Assembly: GCA_977020255.1 (NCBI GenBank)
Contig: CDROCS010003840.1
Span: 248,001-312,000, forward strand
DNA: 64,000 nt
Direction of reading: 5' to 3'
DNA from: Obrimoposthia wandeli
Lineage: Eukaryota
Shown: positions 8,655 to 58,401 of the stretch, one piece after another
Position numbering within the stretch: the stretch's first letter is position 1
Layout: each line of letters starts with the position of its first letter
The notes under the pieces: model-generated
Databases searched by the model: none
Told to the model about the DNA's origin: nothing
The model's input: only the letters and a program-made list of their open reading frames with translations
Position numbers and translations under genes: made by a program

Positions 8655-9827
8655 TTAACGAGTCAGCCACTTTTTGTCTCGGCCGATGATTTCATCCAAA
8701 TACCCCAGAATATTGGGAATCCAAGTAATAAAACGTAGCAGGTGGGTAAATAGAGGCAGCATGGCCATTTCTAGCCAGCTGAGATTATGTGGGTTACCCG
8801 TTTTCCCGATGAAGATAAAAATAAATATTGATTCGACCAGTAGAGCTATAGTCATGATGGTCAAAGGGAGCCACATATCGAAGATTGCAAACAGCGGCAT
8901 CGCAATTAATATTGGTGGAAACAAAAATTCGGTTGCTGAAATCAGGAACCAAGGCAAAGAAACGATGCCCATAAATGGCGAAACCTTCCAAGTTTCCCAG
9001 AATGCTTCTACACGCCCCCTAGACCACCTTCTGCGTTGTCGGAACAGTGCATTGTTATTTTCAGGGCATTGAGTAGTAGCAATAGCCTGAGCGGCATATC
9101 CAGTTCGGTAGCGATTGGCCAACGCTTTCCAACACCAGGCAATGTCTTCAACCAACCATTCACTCCAGCCTCCGAGTTCTTGCACTACACTGGCTCGATG
9201 TGCGACAAATGCACCTGCAAGCACTGGCACGACTCCTAACTGATCCTGAGATGTTCTAAGTGCACCATGAACGCCTATATGCTCATAGAATTGTGATTTA
9301 CAAAGTAGGTTGCTCTCGCGATTTTTTGGCACAACGTAACCGCAAACTGCAGCGTATTCAGGGTGGCTCCAAATTTTACTGGCTAGTGAAAGAATACCGC
9401 CGGGTTCAATAAAAGTATCACTGTCAACTATGATGTAAATTTCTCCCGTAGCGACCTGCCGCTCTAGGGCAAAGTCTAATGCAGCACCTTTTCTCCCCGT
9501 ATTTTCATCTCTGGTCAGTAATAGGTATTCTTGCTTTCTTTTTTTCTGCAACCATATTTCTACGCTAGCTGGTGTTTTATTTGTAGAACCATCATTAATA
9601 ATAAGCACTTGGATTTTTGACGGATATTCCTGTACATCAACTTTCTCAAGCGCAGTTAGTAATAAGTTTTCATCCTCATTATAAAAAGGGACAAACACTG
9701 TAACTAAAGGAAGATCATTCCTAATTGTTTCTGGTTTCCACTTCAGCATAAAGATAGCCATTAGAGCCATAACGCACATAAGCTCTACTATAAGCGGTAC
9801 TGATATTATTATTGATAGCGTGTCCAT
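8655..9827 (-). CDS. Family 2 glycosyltransferase, processive membrane type (PgaC/IcaA-like)
   Basis: VPFYNE, INDGS, VDSD, VED and QRRRW motifs; N- and C-terminal TM segments. Confidence 0.9.
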   Translation of the reverse strand: MDTLSIIISVPLIVELMCVMALMAIFMLKWKPETIRNDLPLVTVFVPFYNEDENLLLTALEKVDVQEYPSKIQVLIINDGSTNKTPASVEIWLQKKRKQEYLLLTRDENTGRKGAALDFALERQVATGEIYIIVDSDTFIEPGGILSLASKIWSHPEYAAVCGYVVPKNRESNLLCKSQFYEHIGVHGALRTSQDQLGVVPVLAGAFVAHRASVVQELGGWSEWLVEDIAWCWKALANRYRTGYAAQAIATTQCPENNNALFRQRRRWSRGRVEAFWETWKVSPFMGIVSLPWFLISATEFLFPPILIAMPLFAIFDMWLPLTIMTIALLVESIFIFIFIGKTGNPHNLSWLEMAMLPLFTHLLRFITWIPNILGYLDEIIGRDKKWLTR

Positions 9828-9849: not shown

Positions 9850-11232
9850 TTAAATCAGATAATCTGACATTAATTCATGTATTTTTTTTCTTGAACCACA
9901 ATTACCTTTCAGTCTCGGGTCAGAAAATATGGTAAATCTCGAGTACTTTATGTTTCTGTATTTGAATTTAGGCTTTGCTTCCTGATAGCCAACTAATTCA
10001 AGTGCTGAATGTATTTCACTTGCAAATCTATTTTCATCAAAATCACAATCAGACAGTCTCGATACGTGCTCTTTTCCCTTTCTTAATACTTCTTTTATTT
10101 TTTTTCCGATTTCGGTAAGGTCTTTTGTCTTTAAGGGGATACCACACTCAATAGCGGTATACCTATTTTCCTGCTCTTCCAATGTTGAAATGAACTTATC
10201 TATCAGCGCTCTCCGTTGCTCAAGAGCAAGACCTGACTGGCTATGTTTATTTAAGTGATAGAAAAAAGTTTCTAGCCACTCGGTTATTCCACAGTGGTCA
10301 TCCCAAGTAGCACCTAGGCCTGATGTAAGTAAAACGTTAGAAAAATCACCTATACCTGACATTGTTCCTAAGTCTAAAAAGCGTCCATCAAGTGCAATAT
10401 TTGAACTGGTTAACGAACCATGTGGCATCCCTTTCACCCGGCTAGCCGCCATTTGCGTAGCAAACCGAATAACAAACCGTTCAACTATGTCGTAAATCGG
10501 GGTATCGCTCCCTGTTTTAGAACGTTCGTTTTCCTCCAGTATCGTTATCGACTCTTCAACATACTTGTGTGTTGCGTCGCGAAGGCGTACGTATTCCTGC
10601 TTTGGCCAAAAATTCAACGCTGGTTCGAAGTGTGCTGGTCGGGTAGCAACTTCTCGAATCATGATCGAGCAAGGCTGCTCAACGATGTCTCCAAAAGTAT
10701 TGGCGCCAACGATAGTCTGAGGAGTTCTTATGACAGCAATAATGCGTAAAGCACCAAAAGGCAGTTCCCTATGACAGATTTCGCTCCAGATGGATTCACT
10801 CAACGCTTCACTCAACGGTAACTTACCTGATGAATGTCCTTCATCAACATTGATTGCAACTAGAGGGTTGACACCGTTACCTTTAATCTGCAACTGGCCG
10901 TTCAACCCACAGCGCGCGCTGCCTCCATTCCCCACATCACCAGTATTACCATACCGATCTGCAAGAAACATTTTTTTGTCACCCAAGTTTAGATCTGTAT
11001 CGTCAGCATAGCCGCGGCTAACATAAGCAAAGTTATCTAATATGAGTTTTTCCGCACTTTTGATGCTAATACCATGCTCTTCAAGATAGTTTTCATTGAG
11101 CCAGGAAATTTCGGGATTTTTTATTTTATAGGCCGGATATTCGACAAAACTGCACTCTGCAAGGCAGTCTCCAAAGATCAACGTATTATCTCTGTCTGGG
11201 CTATCGTAAGTCTCAAGAATGTTATCTTTCAT
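9850..11232 (-). CDS. MchC/MceJ-like protein (SelO/YdiU pseudokinase-like fold)
   Basis: ADRYGNTGDVGNGGSARCG, QIKGNGVNPL, HSSGKL and HGSLTSSNIALDGRFLDLG motifs. Confidence 0.8.
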   Translation of the reverse strand: MKDNILETYDSPDRDNTLIFGDCLAECSFVEYPAYKIKNPEISWLNENYLEEHGISIKSAEKLILDNFAYVSRGYADDTDLNLGDKKMFLADRYGNTGDVGNGGSARCGLNGQLQIKGNGVNPLVAINVDEGHSSGKLPLSEALSESIWSEICHRELPFGALRIIAVIRTPQTIVGANTFGDIVEQPCSIMIREVATRPAHFEPALNFWPKQEYVRLRDATHKYVEESITILEENERSKTGSDTPIYDIVERFVIRFATQMAASRVKGMPHGSLTSSNIALDGRFLDLGTMSGIGDFSNVLLTSGLGATWDDHCGITEWLETFFYHLNKHSQSGLALEQRRALIDKFISTLEEQENRYTAIECGIPLKTKDLTEIGKKIKEVLRKGKEHVSRLSDCDFDENRFASEIHSALELVGYQEAKPKFKYRNIKYSRFTIFSDPRLKGNCGSRKKIHELMSDYLI

Positions 11233-28128: not shown

Positions 28129-29799
28129 ATGACTGAATCTTTTGCTTTACTCTTTGAAGAGTCTCTAAACGAAATCGAAACACGCCCAGGCGCTATCGTT
28201 AAAGGTACTGTTATCGCTATCGAGAACGGTTACGTTCTTGTTGATGCAGGCCTTAAGTCAGAATCTTCTATCCCAGTTGAAGAATTCAAGAACGCTGCTG
28301 GCGAACTTGAAGTTGAAGTTGGTGCAGAAGTTGACGTAGCACTTGATGCTATCGAAGATGGTTTCGGTGAGACTAAACTTTCTCGTGAAAAAGCTAAGCG
28401 TCATGAAGCTTGGATCCAGCTTGAAAAAGCTTACGAAGAAGCTGAAACAGTTGTTGGTATCATCAACGGTAAAGTTAAGGGCGGCTTCACAGTTGAACTT
28501 AACGGTATCCGTGCGTTCCTACCTGGTTCACTAGTAGACGTTCGTCCAGTTCGTGACACTGCTCACCTTGAAAACAAAGAGCTAGAGTTCAAAGTAATCA
28601 AGCTTGATCAGAAGCGTAACAACGTTGTTGTTTCTCGCCGCGCAGTTATCGAATCTGAAAACAGCGTTGAGCGTGACGAGCTACTTGCTTCTCTACAAGA
28701 AGGTATGGAAGTTAAAGGTATCGTTAAGAACCTTACTGACTACGGCGCATTCGTTGATCTTGGCGGTGTTGATGGTCTTCTTCACATTACTGATATGGCT
28801 TGGAAGCGCGTTAAGCACCCAAGCGAAATCGTTAATGTTGGCGATGAAATCAACGTTAAAGTTCTTAAGTTCGACCGTGAGCGTACTCGCGTATCACTAG
28901 GTCTTAAGCAACTTGGCGAAGATCCATGGGTAGCAATCGCTAAGCGTTACCCAGAAAGCACTAAGCTTTCTGGCCGTGTTACTAACCTTACTGACTACGG
29001 TTGCTTCGTTGAAATCGAAGAAGGCGTTGAAGGTCTTGTACACGTTTCTGAAATGGATTGGACTAACAAAAACATCCACCCATCGAAAGTTGTTAACGTT
29101 GGCGACGAAGTTGAAGTTATGGTTCTTGATATCGACGAAGAACGTCGTCGTATCAGCCTAGGTCTTAAGCAGTGTAAAGCTAACCCATGGCAGTCATTTG
29201 CAGAAATGCAAGCTAAGGGCGATCGCGTAACTGGTAAGATCAAGTCTATTACTGACTTCGGTATCTTCATCGGTCTTGACGGCGGTATCGACGGTCTTGT
29301 TCACCTATCTGACATTTCTTGGAATGTTACAGGTGAAGATGCAGTTCGTGACTTCAAGAAAGGCGACGAAATTTCTGCAGTAGTTCTAGCAGTAGACGCA
29401 GAGCGTGAGCGTATCTCTCTTGGCGTTAAGCAGATCGAAGAAGACCCATTCAACAGCTACGTAGCTGATAATAAGAAAGGTGTTCTTGTAAACGGTACTG
29501 TTACTGCAGTTGACGCTAAAGGCGCAACAGTAGAACTAGCTGTAGGCGTTGAAGGTTACCTTCGCGCTTCTGAAGCATCTGTAGATCGTGTTGAAGACGC
29601 AACTCTAGTACTTTCTGTTGGCGATTCTGTTGAAGCTAAATTCACAGGCGTTGACCGTAAGAACCGCGTAGTTAACCTATCTGTTCGTGCTAAAGATGTT
29701 GCTGATGAGCAAGAAGCAATGGCTACTCTGAACAAGCAAGAAGAAGCTTCGTTCGGTAACGCTATGGCTGACGCTTTCAAAGCTGCTAAAGGCGAATAA
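28129..29799 (+). CDS. rpsA: 30S ribosomal protein S1
   Basis: Six S1 repeats; strong codon bias; SD-less GAAGATTAATTAA leader. Confidence 0.99.
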
Positions 29800-49105: not shown

Positions 49106-49315
49106 AGTGATTACCGCGTTAGTTGCTGAATTACATTCGTGGGCTTAATTAAGATATAAAGCCAATATGGTGAAACTATACTACTTTTCATCGATTCGCT
49201 CCTAGTAGTTAGCTTTCTATTTTTATTATAGTTTGATCGGGATCGACTTTTTTCTTTCAGTTTTGAAACTAAATTCAAAAAATAAGGCTTTTTTTACTCT
49301 TATAAAAGGTTATTT

Positions 49316-49330
49316 TGTAGTTTAATTTCA
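49316..49330. promoter_or_regulatory. Putative HexR operator in the hexR divergent gap
   Basis: TGTAG-TTTAA-TTTCA; weaker copy at 49171-49185. Confidence 0.45.
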
Positions 49331-49432
49331 TGTGTGAGGGATTAATTTACAGGGTGAAATAAATAAAAAGTCATTTTATATCTTTTAGCGCACTTCGGTA
49401 TGTTTTTAAATATAACAAGATAAGGTAATAGT

Positions 49433-50260
49433 ATGAAAGTAAGTATATGTGGTTGTGGTTGGTTAGGTTTACCGTTGGCAAAATATTTAGTGTCTCAAGG
49501 CTTTGATGTCTATGGCAGTAAAACAAGCCTAGAGGCGGCTAAACAGCTAGAAAGTGTCGGTATTCATGGTTTTGAATTAACGATTCCGCTTGAGCAATCA
49601 CAGATCAGCCCTGATATGAACGCTTTTTTCGCCACAGATTTGCTGGTTATCAATGTTCCACCAAGACGAAGAACAGTACAGAGTGATGAGTATATTGCTT
49701 CGGTTTTATCATTATCTGTAGCAGCAAAGGAAAATGGTTGTAAGCGAGTTATTTTTATCAGTACCACATCGGTATATGGCAATATGCAAGGTGAAATTAC
49801 GGAGTCAATGCAACCAAGCCCTGATGGTGAATCGGGTATAGCACATTATAAATTAGAACAACTATTGCGTGACATATGGGAAGATGATTTAGTTGTGTTG
49901 CGCTTGTCTGGATTGATTGGACCGAATCGTCATCCTGCTAAGTTTTTATCGGGGCGCACTGGCATCAAGGGGGGGAAATCACCGGTTAATTTAATTCACC
50001 TTGATGACTGTATTCAAGCAATCACGAGCATTATTGTAAAATCCCCAGATTTAAAAACACTGCATCTGGCTGCGCCTAGCCACCCAACACGTGAAGCGTA
50101 TTACACTGCGATGGCATTAAAAGCGGGTCTAGAGCTGCCGAGCTTTGAGGACGATTTAACACCAAAAGGGAAAGTGATTAATTCAGATAGAACAATTAAA
50201 GCGTTAAATCTATCGTTGAAACATCCAGAACTTGCGGTATCAGCGTTAGACATTGGTTGA
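49433..50260 (+). CDS. Atypical SDR / NAD(P)-dependent epimerase-dehydratase (YeeZ-like)
   Basis: GCGWLG, FISTTSVYG, LRLSGLIGP and VNLIHLDD motifs. Confidence 0.88.
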   Translation: MKVSICGCGWLGLPLAKYLVSQGFDVYGSKTSLEAAKQLESVGIHGFELTIPLEQSQISPDMNAFFATDLLVINVPPRRRTVQSDEYIASVLSLSVAAKENGCKRVIFISTTSVYGNMQGEITESMQPSPDGESGIAHYKLEQLLRDIWEDDLVVLRLSGLIGPNRHPAKFLSGRTGIKGGKSPVNLIHLDDCIQAITSIIVKSPDLKTLHLAAPSHPTREAYYTAMALKAGLELPSFEDDLTPKGKVINSDRTIKALNLSLKHPELAVSALDIG

Positions 50261-50277
50261 ATTTTGACGTATCAGGT

Positions 50278-50418
50278 AAAAAAAATCCTGTTGAAAATCA
50301 ACAGGAAATTGTTTTTACACAATAAGGAATTTGTAGCAGCAGTGGCAATTCAGACTATCTAGCTAAATGTAACTTCATCATCCTTTTGGTAAGGATGCGA
50401 ACCAGTAATCTCAATCAT
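50278..50418 (-). ncRNA. VrrA-like sigmaE-dependent sRNA, copy 1 (variant 3' end and terminator)
   Basis: GAACTA-N16-TCTTA promoter at 50424-50450; GCCACTGCT seed; AATTCCTTATTGTGT; TCCTGTTGA/TCAACAGGA hairpin plus T tract. Confidence 0.7.
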
Positions 50419-50534
50419 AGTAATAAGAGTGTGTATTGCTGAGATAGTTCAGATTAATTTTAAAAAAATTAGTCATTTGTTTTAGCGAGAGTGTGAGAAT
50501 GCTTCGTCGGTGTTTTTGTGTGTGTTTATAGGAT

Positions 50535-50682
50535 AAAAAAATCCCGCTGAGAATAATGTCAGCGGGAGGAATGTTCAATAAAACAATTAGGAGTTTGTAG
50601 CAGCAGTGGCAATTTAGACTATCTAGCTAAATGTAATTTCATCATCCTTTTGGTAAGGATGCGAACCAGTAATCTGAATCAT
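50535..50682 (-). ncRNA. VrrA-like sRNA, copy 2
   Basis: Same promoter; GCCACTGCT seed; AACTCCTAATTGT; TCCCGCTGA/TCAGCGGGA terminator. Confidence 0.7.
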
Positions 50683-50798
50683 AGTAATAAGAGTGTGTAT
50701 TGCTGAGATAGTTCAGATTAATTTAAAAAAGTGTCTTATTTACTTTAGCGAGAGAGTGAGAATGCTTTGGCGGTGTTTTTTTTGTGTGTTTATAGGAT

Positions 50799-50946
50799 AA
50801 AAAAATCCCGCTGAGAATAATGTCAGCGGGAGGAATGTTCCAAAAAACAATTAGGAGTTTGTAGCAGCAGTGGTAATTTAGACTATCTAGCTAAATGTAA
50901 CTTCATCACCCTTTTGGTAAGGATGCGAACCAGTAATCTCAATCAT
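50799..50946 (-). ncRNA. VrrA-like sRNA, copy 3
   Basis: Same architecture; ACCACTGCT seed. Confidence 0.7.
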
Positions 50947-51062
50947 AGTAATAAGAGTGTGTATTGCTGATATAGTTCAGATTAATTTAAAAAAAGTGTC
51001 TTATTTACTTTAGCGAGAGAGTGAGAATGCTTTGGGGGTGTTTTTGTGTGTGTTTTCAGGAT

Positions 51063-51210
51063 AAAAAAATCCCGCTGAGAATAATGTCAGCGGGAGGAAT
51101 GTTCCAAAAAACAATTAGGAGTTTGTAGCAGCAGTGGTAATTTAGACTATCTAGCTAAATGTAACTTCATCACCCTTTTGGTAAGGATGCGAACCAGTAA
51201 TCTCAATCAT
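51063..51210 (-). ncRNA. VrrA-like sRNA, copy 4
   Basis: Same architecture; ACCACTGCT seed. Confidence 0.7.
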
Positions 51211-51325
51211 AGTAATAAGAGTGTGTATTGCTGAGATAGTTCAGATTAATTTAAAAAAGTACCTTATTTATTTTAGCAAGAGAGTGAGGGTGCTTTGGGG
51301 GTGTTTTTTTGTGTGTTTATAGGAT

Positions 51326-51473
51326 AAAAAAATCCCGCTGAGAATAGTGTCAGCGGGAGGAATGTTCAATAAAACAATTAGGAGTTTGTAGCAGCAGTGG
51401 CAATTTAGACTATCTAGGTAAATGTAACGTCATCACCCTTTTGGTAAGGATGCGAACCAGTAATCTGAATCAT
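51326..51473 (-). ncRNA. VrrA-like sRNA, copy 5
   Basis: Same architecture; GCCACTGCT seed. Confidence 0.7.
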
Positions 51474-51578
51474 AGTAATAAGAGTGTGTATTGCTGAGAT
51501 AGTTCAGATTAATTTAAAAAAGTACCTTATTTATTTTAGAGGGTGCTTTGGGGGAATGTTTTTAGTGTTTTTCAGGAT

Positions 51579-51726
51579 AAAAAAATCCCGCTGAAAATAA
51601 TGTCAGCGGGAGGAATGTTCCAAAAAACAATTAGGAGTTTGTAGCAGCAGTGGTAATTTAGACTATCTAGGAAAATGTAACTTCATCACCCTTTCGGTAA
51701 GGATGCGAACCAGTAATCTGAATCAT
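51579..51726 (-). ncRNA. VrrA-like sRNA, copy 6
   Basis: Perfect sigmaE -35 GAACTT (51753-51758), 16-nt spacer, -10 TCTTA; ACCACTGCT seed. Confidence 0.72.
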
Positions 51727-51873
51727 AGTAATAAGAGTGTATGCTTCTTGAAAAGTTCAACAATTTTAATTTTAATAAATCATGAATATTCACTTATTGA
51801 CAACGATATTGCCTTCAACAAATGGATGGTTTTTGTTGGAGATATTGTGTACTAAAAATACATAAAAAAACTC

Positions 51874-52012
51874 GCTGAATATCAGCGAGTAGAAGTTTAA
51901 AGTATTCAAACACAATAAGTAGGAGTTTCAGCAGTAGCATTGCTAATTAAAGGAACGATTAATTTTGCGTGGGCGGCCAGCTCACAAAATAATCCTTTAA
52001 TCTTAATGTCAA
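51874..52012 (-). ncRNA. vrrA: Divergent VrrA-like sRNA, probable canonical vrrA ortholog
   Basis: GAACTA-N16-TCCTA promoter (52017-52043); ATTGACA start region, CTGGCCG, TACTGCT and AACTCCTA..TTGTGT; ACTCGCTGA/TCAGCGAGT terminator; near TetR-fadE-fabV. Confidence 0.65.
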
Positions 52013-52345
52013 TATATAGGACTCGTGTTTTCAGTGTTAGTTCAAATTAGTTCTATTTAATTTTAGCCATTAGTATAAATTACTGATCTTATTAATTAAT
52101 TCATATCGTCATTTCATTTAGGTGAGGCACTTTTTATTGGAAACATATGATGCAAATCAGAGCATAGTCACGAGTACTCTGGCACATTATCATCAGGCTA
52201 CCTCAACACGTTGGATTCAGAATTCTCGCTTGAGGTAACTTGGGGATCATATCTCTATGATGTTCTAAATCCCTTTTCTGTCTGGCACCGCCTTTCTACC
52301 ATAATTGTGCCAGTCGTGGTCTACGACGTATTGAAGGAGAGCAAA

Positions 52346-53470
52346 GTGGCTCTGAATCTTGACCTAGATATCTATTTAAATCAGCTTCAACAACTTGTAA
52401 ATATCGATTGTGGTACGCGAACACCATCTGGCGTAGCTAAAATTGCTGATGTGTTGACACCAATGTTTGAACAAATTGGGTTTCATGTTGAGCGTTTTCA
52501 ATTACATAATGATGCAGGTCCTTGCCTAAAAATAACCAATAAGCCTGACGCGCAATTCTATGACGTGATGTTAAGCGGCCATATGGATACCGTCTTTCCT
52601 GAAGGTACAGTTGCTAATCGTCCGATGACGTATGATGACGAGAAAGCTTACGGTCCTGGTGTCACCGATATGAAATCTGGCATATTGAGTGCGTGGTATG
52701 CCTTACAGGCGTTGACGCTTGAAGATCTGGATCGCTTATCAATTGTTGTCGCCTTAAATTGCGATGAAGAGATTGGTTCTTTATATTCTCGTGAATGGCT
52801 AGAAAGTATTGCACGTCAAAGTCGTCAAGTATTAGTGTGTGAAGCGTCACGTCCGACCGGAAACCTAATCCGATCTCGTAAGGGTAATGCTAAATATGAA
52901 CTTGAATTTCATGGGGTTGCTTCTCATGCCGGTTCCGCTTTAGCTGATGGTATTTCTGCTATTTATGAGTTGAGCCATTGGTCGTTGGCAATTAAAGATA
53001 TGGTTAACCTGAGTACTGGCACCACGATGAATGTGGGGGTTATTGAAGGGGGCATGGCTGTTAATGTTGTGCCTGATTACGCAAAAGCCATTGTTGATCT
53101 GCGTTTCTGGAATACAGAAGAAGCGGAAGCTATCGATAAAACGTTGCGTGAAATGGCGGAAAATCCTTTTGAAAAAGGGGCAAGCGTAACTGTAAATCGT
53201 GTCACTTTTAAGCCATCTATGCAACCGACCGTAGATACCGAAGCACTCATTAAATTGGTGAGTGAAGAGGCAGATAAATTAACAATAACGTATGGCTGGG
53301 AAGATGCAGGAGGTGGTTCTGATGGTAACTTTACAGCAGCACTTGGTATTCCGACGTTAGATGGTTTTGGTCCTATGGGGGCTGGTTTCCATAGCGACAA
53401 AGAGTATTTGTTAATTAATTCAATTCAGCCTCGTATCCAGTTACTCGCTAATGTACTAAAGCGTATTTAA
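52346..53470 (+). CDS. M20-family metallopeptidase (glutamate carboxypeptidase-like), likely GTG start at 52346
   Basis: GHMDTV, DMKSG, CDEEIGS, HAG, SDGN and H-x-x-E motifs; AAGGAG RBS. Confidence 0.92.
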   Translation: MALNLDLDIYLNQLQQLVNIDCGTRTPSGVAKIADVLTPMFEQIGFHVERFQLHNDAGPCLKITNKPDAQFYDVMLSGHMDTVFPEGTVANRPMTYDDEKAYGPGVTDMKSGILSAWYALQALTLEDLDRLSIVVALNCDEEIGSLYSREWLESIARQSRQVLVCEASRPTGNLIRSRKGNAKYELEFHGVASHAGSALADGISAIYELSHWSLAIKDMVNLSTGTTMNVGVIEGGMAVNVVPDYAKAIVDLRFWNTEEAEAIDKTLREMAENPFEKGASVTVNRVTFKPSMQPTVDTEALIKLVSEEADKLTITYGWEDAGGGSDGNFTAALGIPTLDGFGPMGAGFHSDKEYLLINSIQPRIQLLANVLKRI

Positions 53471-53519: not shown

Positions 53520-53923
53520 ATATTGAGATGAACCTCAATAAAGAAAACCCGTCTCTATAAGGGGACGGGTTATGAAGAATGTCTTCTAAGAAAAAGCAGT
53601 GGCATAATATAAGACCTGCAAGTCCACTATTTGTTCCCAAAAATGTGATCTTTTTCAATAAAAGATCACATTTAAATTAAGATTTATGCTTGTAAAGAAT
53701 AAGTGTCATTATTAATCATCGATTTACCCTTTCTTGAATTCTGGTGTTTCTGGCCATTTCTGCTTAATAAAAAGCACATCAATATCTAAACTTCTGTGCA
53801 TCTCTTATTGAGAGGCTGTGAAGGATCGGCGTCACATTTTAGAATGTATTTCAATATGAGATACGTAAAACTAACGTTATTTAATTGATTTTAACTTGTT
53901 AAATATGTTGTCGAGATGTAAAG

Positions 53924-53940
53924 TTCAAACATGTGTTTAA
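53924..53940. promoter_or_regulatory. PsrA-type operator upstream of the TetR gene
   Basis: TTCAAACA-TG-TGTTTAA palindrome; implies the true gene start is 53955. Confidence 0.6.
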
Positions 53941-53954
53941 TACGGGTGAATGAA

Positions 53955-54629
53955 ATGGCGGGAAAAGGAGAAACAAAAGGGCGTATTTTGGATGCTGCTG
54001 AACTGCTATTTGCTGAACATGGATTCAAAGAAACCTCACTAAGGACAATAACAAGTAAAGCTGGCGTTAATTTAGCTTCAGTTAATTATCATTACGGCGA
54101 TAAGAAAACATTGGTTAGAGCCGTACTTAGCCGTTATTTAGAACAATTCATGCCTTCGATTAAAAATGAATTGGAAACATTACTTAAGCACGATGAGATT
54201 ACGATGGAAGATGTTTTCTGTTGTGCGAAACAGCCTTTATCATCATTGAATGATTATCGACCTCATGGCGCAACTATTTTTATGTCGTTGATTGGGCGTG
54301 GTTACACCGATGTTCAAGGTCACTTGCGTTGGTTTATCATAACGCGCTACAACGATGTGTTAACCCTTTTTACGAGCGCGGTATGTCGTGCAAACCCATC
54401 GCTTGATCCTGAAACGCTTTTTTGGCGACTGCATTTCACGTTGGGTGCTGCAGTATTTACGATGGCATCAAGTACAGCATTGCGCGAAATCGCTGAAAAT
54501 GATTTTTCCTGCAAAGTTGAAACTGAAGATCTTATTGATCGTTTAGTCCCTTATTTAGCGGCGGGTGTAGCTGCACCTATCGATCAAGGTTTGTCTTTAG
54601 TCTCACCTCCCAAAACAGGCACAGAGTAA
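53955..54629 (+). CDS. TetR-family regulator (PsrA-like)
   Basis: ILDAAELLFAEHGF..TSLRTIT..AGVNLASVNYHYG HTH; lies upstream of fadE. Confidence 0.9.
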   Translation: MAGKGETKGRILDAAELLFAEHGFKETSLRTITSKAGVNLASVNYHYGDKKTLVRAVLSRYLEQFMPSIKNELETLLKHDEITMEDVFCCAKQPLSSLNDYRPHGATIFMSLIGRGYTDVQGHLRWFIITRYNDVLTLFTSAVCRANPSLDPETLFWRLHFTLGAAVFTMASSTALREIAENDFSCKVETEDLIDRLVPYLAAGVAAPIDQGLSLVSPPKTGTE

Positions 54630-54693: not shown

Positions 54694-56970
54694 ATGAGCA
54701 CTTTAACTAATTTGCGTCAACGCTACATCAGTGATCCCGCTTTTAAAATGTTTAAAAAAGTGCTGCCACCATTATCTGATACAGAGCGAGAAGCGATGGA
54801 AGCAGGTAGTGTGTGGTGGGATGGAGAGTTGTTTAGTGGTTCACCTAATTGGAATACTTTGCTGACTTACCCAAAACCAAAGCTCACGGATGAAGAGCAA
54901 ACGTTTATCGATACAAAGCTCGAAACTTTATTGGAGATGCTGAACGATTATGAAATTGTTCAGGAAGACAAAGATCTTTCGCCAGAGGTATGGGCGTATC
55001 TACGAAAAGAAAAGTTTTTCTCGCTGATTATTAGTAAAGAATATGGTGGTTTGAATTTTTCAGCGCTGGCGAACTCTACGATTGTGACAAAAATTGCGAC
55101 GCGCAGTTTAAGCGCTGCAGTCACTGTTATGGTACCTAATTCGTTAGGGCCTGGTGAGTTGCTGTCTCATTACGGCACGCAAGAGCAAAAAGACTATTGG
55201 CTACCACGTTTAGCGCATGGTGAAGAAGTCCCTTGTTTTGCGTTAACTGGTCCTGAAGCGGGTTCAGATGCTGGTAGCATCCCCGATATGGGTATTGTTT
55301 GTTACGGCGAACACCAAGGTAAAGAAGTGCTGGGTATTAAGGTTAGCTGGAACAAGCGTTATATCACCCTTTCACCCGTTGCAACCGTGTTAGGCCTTGC
55401 GTTCAAGCTGCAAGACCCTGACGGCTTGATTGGTGATAAAACGGATATTGGTATTACTTGTGCTTTAATCCCTGCTGATCATCAAGGTGTTGAGATTGGT
55501 GAACGTCACGATCCACTGAATATGGCATTCATGAATGGTCCTACACGTGGGCAAGATGTCTTTATTCCGATGGATTGGGTCATTGGTGGTCAAGAATATG
55601 TGGGTCGCGGCTGGCGTATGCTGGTGGAGTGTCTATCAGCTGGGCGTGGTATTTCATTACCTGCGTTAGGTGCCGCAGTTGGTCACCTAACAGCACGTAC
55701 TACAGGGGCATATTCCTATGTACGTAAGCAATTCGGTATGTCGATCGGTAACTTTGAAGGTGTAGCACAAGCAATGGGGCGTATTGGTGGTTACACCTAT
55801 ATGTTAGAAGCGTCTCGAACGTTAACAACAACGTCGTTGGATCAAGGTGAAACTCCCGGAATTGTTACGGCGATTGCTAAATACCACATGACAGAAATGG
55901 CCCGTACAATCTTAAATGATTCGATGGATATTCATGCCGGACGCGCGATTCAGCTTGGGCCTATGAACTACTTAGGTCACCATTACTTCGGTATTCCTGT
56001 TGCGATTACCGTTGAAGGCGCAAACATTCTGACCCGAAACTTAATGATCTTTGGTCAAGGGGCAACACGTTGTCACCCGTTTGTACTGAAAGAAATGGAA
56101 TCTGCAGCAAATCCTGATGCTAAGCAAGGCGCAAAAGAATTTGATGGCTTGTTATCGAAACACATCAGTTTTGCGGTGGGTAATGTCGCAAAGTCAGTAT
56201 TGAATGCATTCACGGGTTCACGATTTAATTCAGCACCTGTTAGTGGTGAAACTGCGGTGTATTATCGCCATTTATCACGCATGAGTAAGGCACTAGCCGT
56301 TGCTGCTGACTTTGCAATGTTGAGTCTTGGTGGTGAGTTAAAGCGCCGTGAACTGGTATCAGCACGATTAGGTGATGTACTCAGTCACTTGTATTTAGCC
56401 TCTGCAACTTTAAAGCGCTTTGAAGATGAAGGCCGTCAACAACAAGATCTTCCGATGGTGCACTACGCGCTACAACATTGTTTACACCAGTGTGGTGTTG
56501 CCTTTCATGAAGTGCTTAACAACTTCCCACGTAAAGGGGTAGGTCGTACATTGCGTACCATTTTGTTCCCGCTTGGTATTCGTTATGACGCACCAAGTGA
56601 TGAAGTAACGGTTCAAATTGCAAAGCTACTGATGACTCCAGGCGCACATCGCGAGCGTTTAACGAGTCTCTGCTACATAGGCGATAAAGAGTCAGATCCG
56701 GTTGCGATTATGGAACGTGCGTTTGTTGCCATGTACAGCGTGAAAGATATTGAGCGTAAATTGGTACAAGCAACGAAGTCGGGTGAGATCCCACGCAAAA
56801 TTTCATTAACAGAAAAGTTACAAATCGCGCTGGGTGCGGGTATTGTCACAGAAGTAGAAGTTGAAAAAATGCACAATGCTGACCAGTTGAGACAGCAAGC
56901 GATCCAAGTGGATAACTTTGATGCTGATAAATTCAAAAAAAGTGGTCTGCAACCAGGAAAGGCGGCTTAA
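54694..56970 (+). CDS. fadE: Acyl-CoA dehydrogenase
   Basis: VPNSLGPGELL, FALTGPEAGSDA and ITVEGANILTR motifs. Confidence 0.93.
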   Translation: MSTLTNLRQRYISDPAFKMFKKVLPPLSDTEREAMEAGSVWWDGELFSGSPNWNTLLTYPKPKLTDEEQTFIDTKLETLLEMLNDYEIVQEDKDLSPEVWAYLRKEKFFSLIISKEYGGLNFSALANSTIVTKIATRSLSAAVTVMVPNSLGPGELLSHYGTQEQKDYWLPRLAHGEEVPCFALTGPEAGSDAGSIPDMGIVCYGEHQGKEVLGIKVSWNKRYITLSPVATVLGLAFKLQDPDGLIGDKTDIGITCALIPADHQGVEIGERHDPLNMAFMNGPTRGQDVFIPMDWVIGGQEYVGRGWRMLVECLSAGRGISLPALGAAVGHLTARTTGAYSYVRKQFGMSIGNFEGVAQAMGRIGGYTYMLEASRTLTTTSLDQGETPGIVTAIAKYHMTEMARTILNDSMDIHAGRAIQLGPMNYLGHHYFGIPVAITVEGANILTRNLMIFGQGATRCHPFVLKEMESAANPDAKQGAKEFDGLLSKHISFAVGNVAKSVLNAFTGSRFNSAPVSGETAVYYRHLSRMSKALAVAADFAMLSLGGELKRRELVSARLGDVLSHLYLASATLKRFEDEGRQQQDLPMVHYALQHCLHQCGVAFHEVLNNFPRKGVGRTLRTILFPLGIRYDAPSDEVTVQIAKLLMTPGAHRERLTSLCYIGDKESDPVAIMERAFVAMYSVKDIERKLVQATKSGEIPRKISLTEKLQIALGAGIVTEVEVEKMHNADQLRQQAIQVDNFDADKFKKSGLQPGKAA

Positions 56971-57192: not shown

Positions 57193-58401
57193 TTGAAGAT
57201 GATCATCAAACCTAAAATTCGTGGATTTATTTGTACAACAGCGCACCCAGTGGGTTGTGAAGAGAACGTTAGAGAGCAAATCGCATACACTAAAGCTCAA
57301 GGTCCAATTGCAAATGCACCTAAGCGTGTACTTGTTGTAGGCTCTTCTAGTGGTTACGGTTTGTCATCACGTATTGCTGCGGCATTCGGTGGTGATGCAG
57401 CAACTATTGGTGTGTTCTTTGAAAAGCCAGGTACAGAGAAAAAAACCGGTACAGCAGGTTGGTATAACTCAGCAGCATTCGACAAATTGGCTAAAGAAAA
57501 AGGTCTTTACTCTAAGAGCTTGAATGGCGATGCTTTCTCTCATGAAGCGAAACAGAAAACAATCGATCTGATCAAAGCCGACCTAGGTCAGATTGATATG
57601 GTGGTGTATTCGTTAGCATCACCTGTTCGTAAAATGCCTGAAACGGGTGAAGTTGTACGTTCAAGCCTAAAACCAATGGGTGAAACATACACAGCAACAG
57701 CCGTTGATACGAACAAAGATGTATTAATTGAAGCAAGCGTTGAGCCTGCAACAGAGCAAGAAATCGCTGATACCGTTACCGTAATGGGCGGTCAGGATTG
57801 GGAGCTTTGGATTAATGCTCTGTCTGAAGCGGGTGTTCTAGCGGATGGTTGTAAGACAGTTGCTTACAGCTACATCGGTACTGAAATTACTTGGCCAATA
57901 TACTGGCATGGCGCACTAGGCAAGGCGAAGATGGACCTTGATCGTGCAGCATCAGAATTAAATAACAAGCTATCTGCTACTGGTGGTTCAGCGAATGTTG
58001 CCGTATTAAAGAGTGTTGTTACTCAGGCGAGTTCTGCAATTCCAGTAATGCCTCTTTATATCGCAATGGTCTTTAAGAAGATGCGAGAAGAAGGAGTGCA
58101 TGAAGGTTGTATGCAGCAAATCTATCGTATGTTCACTCAACGCTTGTACAAGGCTGATGGTACAGTTGCGGAAGTAGACGAAGAGAATCGTTTACGTCTT
58201 GATGATTGGGAACTGCGTGAAGACATCCAGAAGCACTGTCGTGACTTATGGTCTAGCGTAACCAATGAAAACTTGTTTGAAGTTGCTGATTATCAGGAAT
58301 ATAAAGACGAGTTCATTAAGTTATTTGGCTTCGGCATCGATGCAATTGATTATGATGCAGACGTTAATACACTGGTTGAATTTGATGTAGAAAGTATTTA
58401 A
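57193..58401 (+). CDS. fabV: Enoyl-ACP / trans-2-enoyl-CoA reductase
   Basis: [14 protein letters not shown] and [10 protein letters not shown] motifs. Confidence 0.96.

Follow-up and report, generated by a model that had tools for sequence, protein, structure and literature searches.

The 64-kb window analysed here (positions 248,001 to 312,000 of contig CDROCS010003840.1, assembly GCA_977020255.1) carries on its minus strand what we consider very likely to be seven small RNA (sRNA) genes of the VrrA family: the orthologue of vrrA, here called U0, and six tandem copies of a Photobacterium-specific paralogue, U1–U6, all organised as independent σE-type units. The anatomy of the locus, its homology and synteny with vrrA, the selective constraint and the copy-number variation are observations made by computation. 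The DNA is that of Photobacterium profundum. A scan anchored on FadE, with each species represented by one genome, yielded 80 loci; the FadE of the window was 99% identical to that of P. profundum ATCC BAA-1252 (the best of the 80), followed in rank by other Photobacterium, Enterovibrio, Aliivibrio and about 45 Vibrio species, and then by Alteromonadales. An initial annotation of the sequence had described a tandem array of six genes at 50278-51758; these six units were recovered by repeat detection, motifs and terminators, and a seventh, diverged one, U0, lies immediately upstream of them, outside the coordinates it gave.

Sequence reading and a motif scan both place six head-to-tail units of 253–264 bp on the minus strand at 50278-51758, and Tandem Repeats Finder reports a single array at 50319-51740 with a period of 264, 5.4 copies and 93% matches. 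The promoter-to-promoter distances across U1–U6 are 253, 263, 264, 264 and 264 bp. The promoter motif GAACTW-N16-TCYTA has eight matches in the window, where 0.15 would be expected from shuffled sequence, and seven of them lie on the minus strand (52043, 51758, 51505, 51242, 50978, 50714 and 50450); the eighth, at 28495-28521 on the plus strand, lies inside a 556-codon rpsA-like (ribosomal protein S1) open reading frame (ORF) and was rejected as a chance match. A block of the form ACTGCTG-N0-6-AAAYTCCT is found seven times (0.01 expected), once per unit, and seven intrinsic terminators on the minus strand stand one behind each unit. Every unit is a full gene with its own promoter and its own terminator, not a repeat within one transcript, which agrees with the earlier description of self-contained σE-type sRNA genes, σE dependence being assumed by analogy. 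Within an array unit the order is GAACTW-N16-TCTTA, ATGATT[C/G]AGA, [A/G]CCACTGCTGCT, AAACTCCTAA, a GC-rich hairpin and a T run, with AAATTCCTTA in place of AAACTCCTAA in the last unit, U6. The strings ATGATT[G/C]AGA, [G/A]CCACTGCT and AACTCCTA reported in the initial annotation are all present, as is its variant AATTCCTTA in the lowest-coordinate unit. The promoter of U0 reads GAACTA-N16-TCCTA (52043-52017), and its terminator at 51890-51870 is followed by a U7 run. The features of the locus are:

51864..52043, minus strand: U0, vrrA orthologue (RNA from about 52010 to 51864), assigned by the Vibrio-only and leave-species-out profiles and the tree
51579..51758, minus strand: U1, first array unit (RNA from about 51725 to 51579), with a promoter region unlike that of the inner units
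51326..51505, minus strand: U2, array unit (RNA from about 51472 to 51326)
51063..51242, minus strand: U3, array unit (RNA from about 51209 to 51063)
50799..50978, minus strand: U4, array unit (RNA from about 50945 to 50799), 98% identical to U3
50535..50714, minus strand: U5, array unit (RNA from about 50681 to 50535)
50278..50450, minus strand: U6, terminal unit (RNA from about 50417 to 50278), with its own distinct terminator
50286..50306, both strands: near-perfect palindromic hairpin that scores as a terminator either way

This hairpin ends U6 on the minus strand, and on the plus strand it forms a terminator 26 nt past the stop codon of the convergent epimerase gene. It may be a shared bidirectional terminator.

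The motif found in all seven units is of the σE-type promoter class GGAACTT-N16-TCnnA. All 91 family members collected here have, without exception, GAAC, a spacer of exactly 16 nt and the TC of the -10 box, and the sixth -10 position is A in 89 of the 91; this geometry is unchanged from V. mimicus to P. profundum. It also equals that of the annotated E. coli rybB gene, in which GAACT-N16-GTCTTA is followed by 6 nt to +1. For V. cholerae, the RpoE dependence of vrrA and micV has been established experimentally (PMC6694218).

The predicted RNAs, counted from about 5–6 nt past the -10 box through the last residue of the U run, are 140–148 nt long, in line with the 141–148 nt first proposed. In each predicted fold, a long 5' hairpin is followed by an unpaired stretch containing CCACUGCUGCUACAAACUCCUAAUUGU and then by a terminator hairpin; relative to shuffles, the z-scores are -3.2 to -4.5. 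Two pairing regions have been described for VrrA, namely R1, a seed common to MicV and RybB, and R2 (nt 90-107), which base-pairs with the ribosome-binding site of lpp (Peschek et al. 2019, PMC6694218); the CRCUGCU-type seed that the initial annotation had attributed to VrrA, MicV and RybB is R1 as defined there. In the units of the window, R1 is GCCACUGCUGCU, the first nine bases of which are the 5' end of E. coli RybB, and R2 is AACUCCUAAUUGU, an anti-Shine-Dalgarno block. Both are present in every unit and constitute the most conserved blocks of the family: in an alignment of about 50 species, the near-invariant columns are ..CTGC.. in R1, AACTCCTA in R2 and the base of the terminator. Across 73 members, the mean probability of being unpaired is 0.68–0.78 for R1-R2 versus 0.30–0.41 for the 5' domain. 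Three seed classes can be distinguished, with GCUACUGCUG--AAACUCCUAC in U0 (R1 variant GCUACUGCUG, R2 AAACUCCUAC, together with an apical-loop motif CUGGCCGCC), GCCACUGCUGCUACAAACUCCUAA in U1–U5 and AAAUUCCUUA in U6, whose R2 variant is AAAUUCCUUAUUGUG.

The position of the locus connects it to vrrA. The Rfam VrrA model matches the loci of V. mimicus, V. splendidus, V. cincinnatiensis and V. ordalii with 77–158 bits, and these Vibrio matches lie at 8942-9115 (FadE starting at 10001), on the strand opposite FadE and directly upstream of TetR. In Photobacterium, the units are found where the Rfam-verified genes lie in Vibrio, and on the same strand, opposite TetR-FadE-FabV. On the epimerase side, the neighbours in the window are TyrR-like, pyruvate kinase, HexR/RpiR and epimerase genes; in P. 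profundum, pepT sits between TetR and the sRNA genes. The flanking genes are:

49433..50260, plus strand: NAD-dependent epimerase-family gene, convergent with the array
52211..53470, plus strand: peptidase T-like (M20) gene, pepT, divergent from U0, with a TTG start (the true start may sit slightly downstream)
53931-54629, plus strand: TetR-family regulator, synteny anchor with Vibrio vrrA
54694-56970, plus strand: FadE-type acyl-CoA dehydrogenase, synteny anchor with Vibrio vrrA
57193-58401, plus strand: FabV enoyl reductase, synteny anchor with Vibrio vrrA

Profile searches lead to the same family. An nhmmer profile of the window units finds 2–6 copies in other Photobacterium loci, and after four iterations it recovers 92 matches in 60 loci, all syntenic and on the same strand, including the four Rfam-verified vrrA genes, with zero off-target matches in about 1.7 Mb. 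A profile built from Photobacterium only finds Vibrio vrrA with E-values down to 1e-6, and all of its matches to E=1 lie at the vrrA site. Conversely, a Vibrio-only profile finds the Photobacterium copies with E-values down to 2e-11 and U0 of the window with E=0.0015. A profile that drew on 78 members in 57 loci and excluded all P. profundum sequences detects all seven units (E from 2e-14 for U0 to 1e-3), and no other site in the window matches it at E<=10. A distant blastn search of the array against a plasmid collection gave no match. Judged by synteny, profile homology, promoter and pairing modules, and not by the curated Rfam model, all seven units belong to the VrrA family. The initial label of a VrrA-like locus is borne out by these same four lines of evidence; it needs amending in that the true vrrA is U0, which had been missed, and that the array units are diverged paralogues.

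We regard U0 as the vrrA orthologue because it has kept the VrrA apical loop and groups with the copy nearest TetR/pepT (A-type) of P. lipolyticum, P. marinum, P. proteolyticum, P. alginatilyticum and P. nomapromontoriensis, in a tree that was built from short sequences and has modest resolution. The additional copies have no VrrA loop and other 5' hairpins, and share the seed, R2 and the terminator. All 11 array units of P. profundum form one clade in the tree, and other Photobacterium species carry two or three paralogues that have clearly diverged and have orthologues in further species. On sequence grounds, U1–U6 represent a tandem expansion, specific to P. profundum, of a Photobacterium paralogue, and the tree points to several tandem duplications within individual lineages. 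The sampled Vibrio, Aliivibrio, Enterovibrio and Parasalinivibrio have one copy at the locus, eleven other Photobacterium species have 2–4, P. profundum BAA-1252 has 6 and the window has 7. Counting array units only, three independent assemblies hold 6 (window), 5 (BAA-1252) and 4, the last being a 324-kb metagenome contig with U0 and four array units at a 263-nt period.

Comparison between strains shows how the array behaves over time. The inner units share 92–98% identity within a strain versus 79–86% between the two strains, while in cross-strain pairs of the window and BAA-1252 the terminal units are 88% and the U0 copies 80% identical. The likeness of the inner units within each strain, together with the orthologous edges, points to concerted evolution or ongoing unequal crossover. 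U1–U5 have identical R1-R2 blocks and nearly identical promoters. BAA-1252, the metagenome contig and the last copy of P. lipolyticum share the R2 variant of U6, AAAUUCCUUAUUGUG, with the window; it is conserved rather than decayed. Between the strains, identity is 57% in the inter-gene spacers, 72% in the N16 promoter spacer, 88% in the -35 box, 100% in the -10 box, 87% in the 5' hairpin and 97% in R1-R2. The contrast between the spacers on the one hand and the -10 box and R1-R2 on the other implies purifying selection on each gene. Every unit of the three assemblies retains intact promoter boxes, an intact seed and an intact terminator.

Searches for exact copies of the epimerase, pyruvate kinase and TetR proteins gave no match, and HexR retrieved only short contigs. 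These short-read contigs (SRA and JGI; L082 1-121, L083 1-206), which carry the exact HexR, end about 120–200 nt beyond the epimerase, at the array edge. Since such contigs break there, the copy number would be invisible in most short-read data.

Transcripts that probably represent units of this VrrA-family array were recorded in the 2012 transcriptome of P. profundum SS9. Table S8 of Campanaro et al. 2012 contains PBPRA2428a-d, four transcripts at chr1 2812170-2813123 that are marked 'repeated', have no Rfam name and start 263 nt apart (PMC3505737). Their neighbours in the table of untranslated regions are PBPRA2429 (-, COG MG), PBPRA2430 (+, K), PBPRA2431 (+, G) and PBPRA2434 (-, KE) (PMC3505737), which are the epimerase, HexR, pyruvate kinase and TyrR of the window, with the same COG classes, order and orientation in a reversed locus. 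The distances of HexR, pyruvate kinase and TyrR agree within 8 nt between window and SS9. Anchored on the epimerase start, PBPRA2428a-d fall on U3–U6 with their 3' ends 6–10 nt beyond the terminators. Transcript d falls short of b and c by 8 nt, and U6 of the other units by 7 nt. Transcription of the units is thereby partly documented, from the literature, and PBPRA2428a-d, anonymous since 2012, would gain a probable identity. The SS9 spacer between hexR and the epimerase gene is 264 nt longer than that of the window (49106-49432 in the window versus chr1 ~2813963-2814553), which is one array period, and the pepT side of SS9 is about 460–500 nt longer; SS9 may carry more units. An offset in the epimerase annotation was rejected as the cause of the length difference, codon 89 not being a start codon. 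From these differences in locus length, the window is probably not the SS9 reference. The longer hexR–epimerase spacer of SS9 also holds a further 'repeated' transcript, PBPRA2429a.

Several observations weigh against assigning the whole locus to σE-dependent VrrA-type genes. The Rfam VrrA model (RF01456) has no match in the window at the gathering threshold (50 bits), nor in 49500-52800 at E<=10. No Rfam family at all is found at gathering anywhere in the 64-kb window, and at E<=10 the locus yields no VrrA, MicV or RybB, only weak terminator-driven matches (anti-hemB, mir-651). By the terms of the initial annotation, which had named a missing VrrA covariance match as counting against it, this result is adverse. 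The same model at gathering also misses the syntenic homologues of Aliivibrio kagoshimensis (L017 7581-7747) and P. phosphoreum (L014 8533-8968), both of which have an intact σE promoter and terminator; the reach of RF01456 therefore appears to be limited to Vibrio, and the model could be widened to cover Photobacterium and Aliivibrio. The Vibrio-only profile reaches U0 directly, not U1–U6, so that the latter are tied to VrrA via intermediate Photobacterium copies and shared 3' modules. Unlike U0, which has the loop motif, U1–U6 do not contain the VrrA apical loop GGCCGYC and have a different 5' stem. From the mixed paralogues, RNAalifold recovered nothing but the terminator, and from 51 orthologue-type sequences it gave no consensus structure. 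When the Rfam VrrA structure was projected on a MAFFT alignment of these 51 sequences, the terminator was 75% paired versus 38–52% in slid-partner controls, while the 5' stems were not above the slid controls in this alignment, in which the variable-length 5' domain cannot be aligned by sequence alone. Covariation clearly backs the terminator helix only. The promoters of the array units read CTCTTA, with C in place of the G that usually precedes the TC of the -10 box in the family (GTCTNA). As to transcription, the SS9 RNA sequencing was not strand-specific and used random hexamers, with most strands given as 'nd' (PMC3505737), and the SS9 coordinates cannot be mapped exactly onto the window, the SS9 locus differing in length.

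Within the vrrA genes of V. galatheae (L024 ~9085-9105) and V. ouci (L066 ~9090-9110), the 5' domain contains an extra GC-rich hairpin of about 17 nt, e.g. GGGGCTGATGCCCC. These extra hairpins show that the 5' domain tolerates insertions.

The alternatives to seven working sRNA genes differ in what they make of the repeats. That the repeat number is an assembly artefact is barely credible. Short-read assemblies do break at the array edge and the region is hard to assemble, but the window units differ by unit-specific substitutions (81–98% identity), the edge units have unique flanks, and other species carry 2–4 diverged copies; with two further independent assemblies of the same architecture and 5 and 4 array units, we consider misassembly, a risk raised in the initial annotation, to be untenable. 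U0 might instead be the sole working vrrA and the six units a neutral or decaying by-product of slippage or unequal crossover. The unstable copy number (4, 5 and 6 units), the missing apical loop and the lack of recognition by the Rfam model would fit such a view. We nevertheless find it highly doubtful, as a by-product would not be expected to keep promoter boxes, seed and terminators intact throughout, nor to differ so sharply between the -10 box and R1-R2 on one side and the spacers on the other, and transcripts with the array period are on record for SS9. A much more open alternative, which we regard as possible, holds that the copies are kept for diverged targets or induction kinetics rather than for dosage. 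The three seed classes, the conservation of the U6 variant beyond this strain, the different 5' domain of U0, the different promoter spacer of U1 and the two or three diverged, cross-species orthologous paralogues kept by other Photobacterium all speak for it. It leaves the identical R1-R2 blocks and the homogenised U1–U5 unexplained, which dosage or simple array dynamics can account for. Diversification and dosage are compatible, each for different members of the locus.

Real sRNA genes could also answer to a different regulator, either another extracytoplasmic function (ECF) sigma factor or a non-envelope signal. The σE dependence assumed for Photobacterium draws on analogy, and the CTCTTA of the array departs from the GTCTNA of the family. 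Against this stand the exact 16-nt spacer motif, invariant from V. mimicus to P. profundum and matched by E. coli rybB, and the experimental RpoE dependence of the vrrA motif in V. cholerae (PMC6694218); a different regulator is improbable in our view. Finally, the units might be small-protein or dual-function genes, each producing a 19-residue peptide from a leaderless or nearly leaderless AUG. All six array units of the window open with an ATG 5 nt past the -10 box and a 19-codon ORF, MI[QE]ITGSHPY[QR]K[GD]D[ED][VI]TF[ST] (e.g. 51726-51667, minus strand), and BAA-1252 has a related ORF; 11 of the 12 P. profundum units retain the frame. However, U0 and most family members lack it; in BAA-1252 a displaced stop makes it 22 codons long and one unit is frameshifted, and the differences between the peptides of the two strains are amino-acid replacements, e.g. 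S/L, E/Q and F/L. There is no room for a Shine-Dalgarno sequence, the ORF lies entirely inside the 5' hairpin, and the A of the ATG may occupy position -1 and go untranscribed, by analogy with rybB and V. mimicus vrrA, where 6 nt separate the -10 box from +1. As a conserved gene the ORF was rejected, since it is not conserved outside P. profundum; it is probably incidental, and a coding role is very unlikely. The statement in the initial annotation that the units have no conserved ORF is correct beyond P. profundum and overlooked the 19 codons present in all six array units.

Based on these data and on the known behaviour of σE sRNAs, we propose the following hypothetical scenario for the seven VrrA-family genes, in which (i) envelope stress would free σE (RpoE) and all seven promoters would fire together, as extrapolated from V. 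cholerae and E. coli; (ii) the RNAs, probably with Hfq, would pair via R1 and R2 to the translation-initiation regions of outer-membrane protein (OMP) and lipoprotein mRNAs and repress them, again by analogy; (iii) this repression would lower the envelope load; (iv) U1–U5, with their identical seeds, would provide more output per unit of σE activity, while the conserved seed variants of U0 and U6 would possibly shift target preference; and (v) unequal crossover or gene conversion would account for both the origin and the homogeneity of the array. If the array is made or homogenised in this way, its copy number is expected to vary between strains. For Photobacterium, we infer the dependence on σE and Hfq, the targets and the dosage effect. 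Gene-dosage amplification, as suggested initially, is plausible for U1–U5; U0 and U6, with their conserved seed variants, indicate diversification as well.

More tentatively, the array could act as an evolvable dosage dial of the σE RNA arm, unequal crossover altering the number of identical-seed genes (4, 5 and 6 array units here, possibly more in SS9) and this number setting how far OMP synthesis is shut down for a given σE activity, with the largest arrays in the cold- and pressure-adapted P. profundum because envelope stress is chronic in the cold and under pressure; we offer this as speculation. OMP synthesis in SS9, as well as its growth in the cold and under high pressure, is controlled by an rpoE-like locus (Chi & Bartlett 1995, cited in PMC3505737). 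Given that phenotype, the array is an obvious candidate for the RNA effector behind it, and we put this forward as a hypothesis. The locus offers a natural experiment on whether the supply of sRNA limits the envelope stress response. The locus also illustrates that one and the same sRNA family can expand into an array of complete genes with concerted evolution and strain-variable copy number, and it makes birth, homogenisation and diversification of an sRNA family visible side by side, in an orthologue, five identical-seed copies and a conserved seed variant.

VrrA, MicV and RybB are textbook single-copy sRNAs of σE. For Vibrio VrrA (RF01456), the references are Song et al. 2008 and Peschek et al. 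2019 (PMC6694218). The genes of the window resemble Vibrio VrrA in position and strand upstream of TetR-FadE-FabV, in σE-type promoter geometry, in a length of about 140 nt, in profile-level homology and in the succession of 5' hairpin, R1 (C-R-CUGCU), R2 (AACUCCUA..UUGU) and terminator. They differ in number, with one copy in Vibrio versus seven here, none of which the Rfam model detects, in R1 (ACGCUGCUUUU in Vibrio versus GCCACUGCUGCU here) and, for U1–U6, in the 5' stem and the missing GGCCGYC loop. MicV is likewise σE-dependent, has an R1-type seed and is functionally redundant with VrrA (PMC6694218). In contrast to the units, with which it shares the σE-type promoter and the seed type, MicV is 68 nt long, adjoins vc2640, carries the seed at its 5' end and is not homologous. 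RybB of E. coli and Salmonella has the same promoter form (GAACT-N16-GTCTTA), an identical seed 9-mer (GCCACUGCU) and a σE-triggered repression of OMP mRNAs that we presume for the units; unlike them, it is 79 nt long with the seed at its 5' extreme, is encoded as a single copy at the rcdA-ybjL locus and shows no overall homology.

Multicopy sRNAs under one regulator are known from other systems. In Listeria monocytogenes, the genes lhrC1-4 adjoin each other at one locus. LhrC1-5 are multicopy, LisRK-dependent and envelope-stress-induced sRNAs with additive effects and their own promoters, which repress envelope protein mRNAs via anti-Shine-Dalgarno-like motifs (PMC4132741). They parallel the Photobacterium array as envelope-stress sRNAs in several copies, with one regulator, a promoter per copy and anti-Shine-Dalgarno-like motifs, but belong to a Gram-positive host, depend on LisRK rather than σE, are unrelated in sequence and number five versus seven. 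The discussion section of the same work names further sibling sRNAs, among them Qrr1-5 of Vibrio, OmrA/OmrB, PrrF1/PrrF2, RsmX/Y/Z and the csRNAs (PMC4132741). These siblings are likewise duplicated genes under one regulator with redundant or additive action, some of them adjacent pairs. To our knowledge, such siblings are mostly dispersed or in pairs, and none is a σE-dependent head-to-tail array of six to seven genes with copy-number variation between strains. A multicopy or tandem VrrA, or any array of σE-dependent sRNAs, was not found in the searchable literature; LhrC1-5 already provide a multicopy precedent for envelope stress. In that literature, VrrA and Photobacterium are mentioned together in a single paper, which deals with V. 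anguillarum, and a 2026 survey of Vibrio sRNAs treats VrrA only as a conserved single sRNA.

Two short strings from the SS9 small-ORF table concern the region between pepT and TetR. A 16-mer of PBPRA2425b matches the minus strand at 53638-53653, a match that is repeat-flagged and unreliable, and the string of PBPRA2425a has no match in the window. From the latter mismatch, the pepT–TetR intergenic region either differs from that of SS9 or holds a dispersed repeat.

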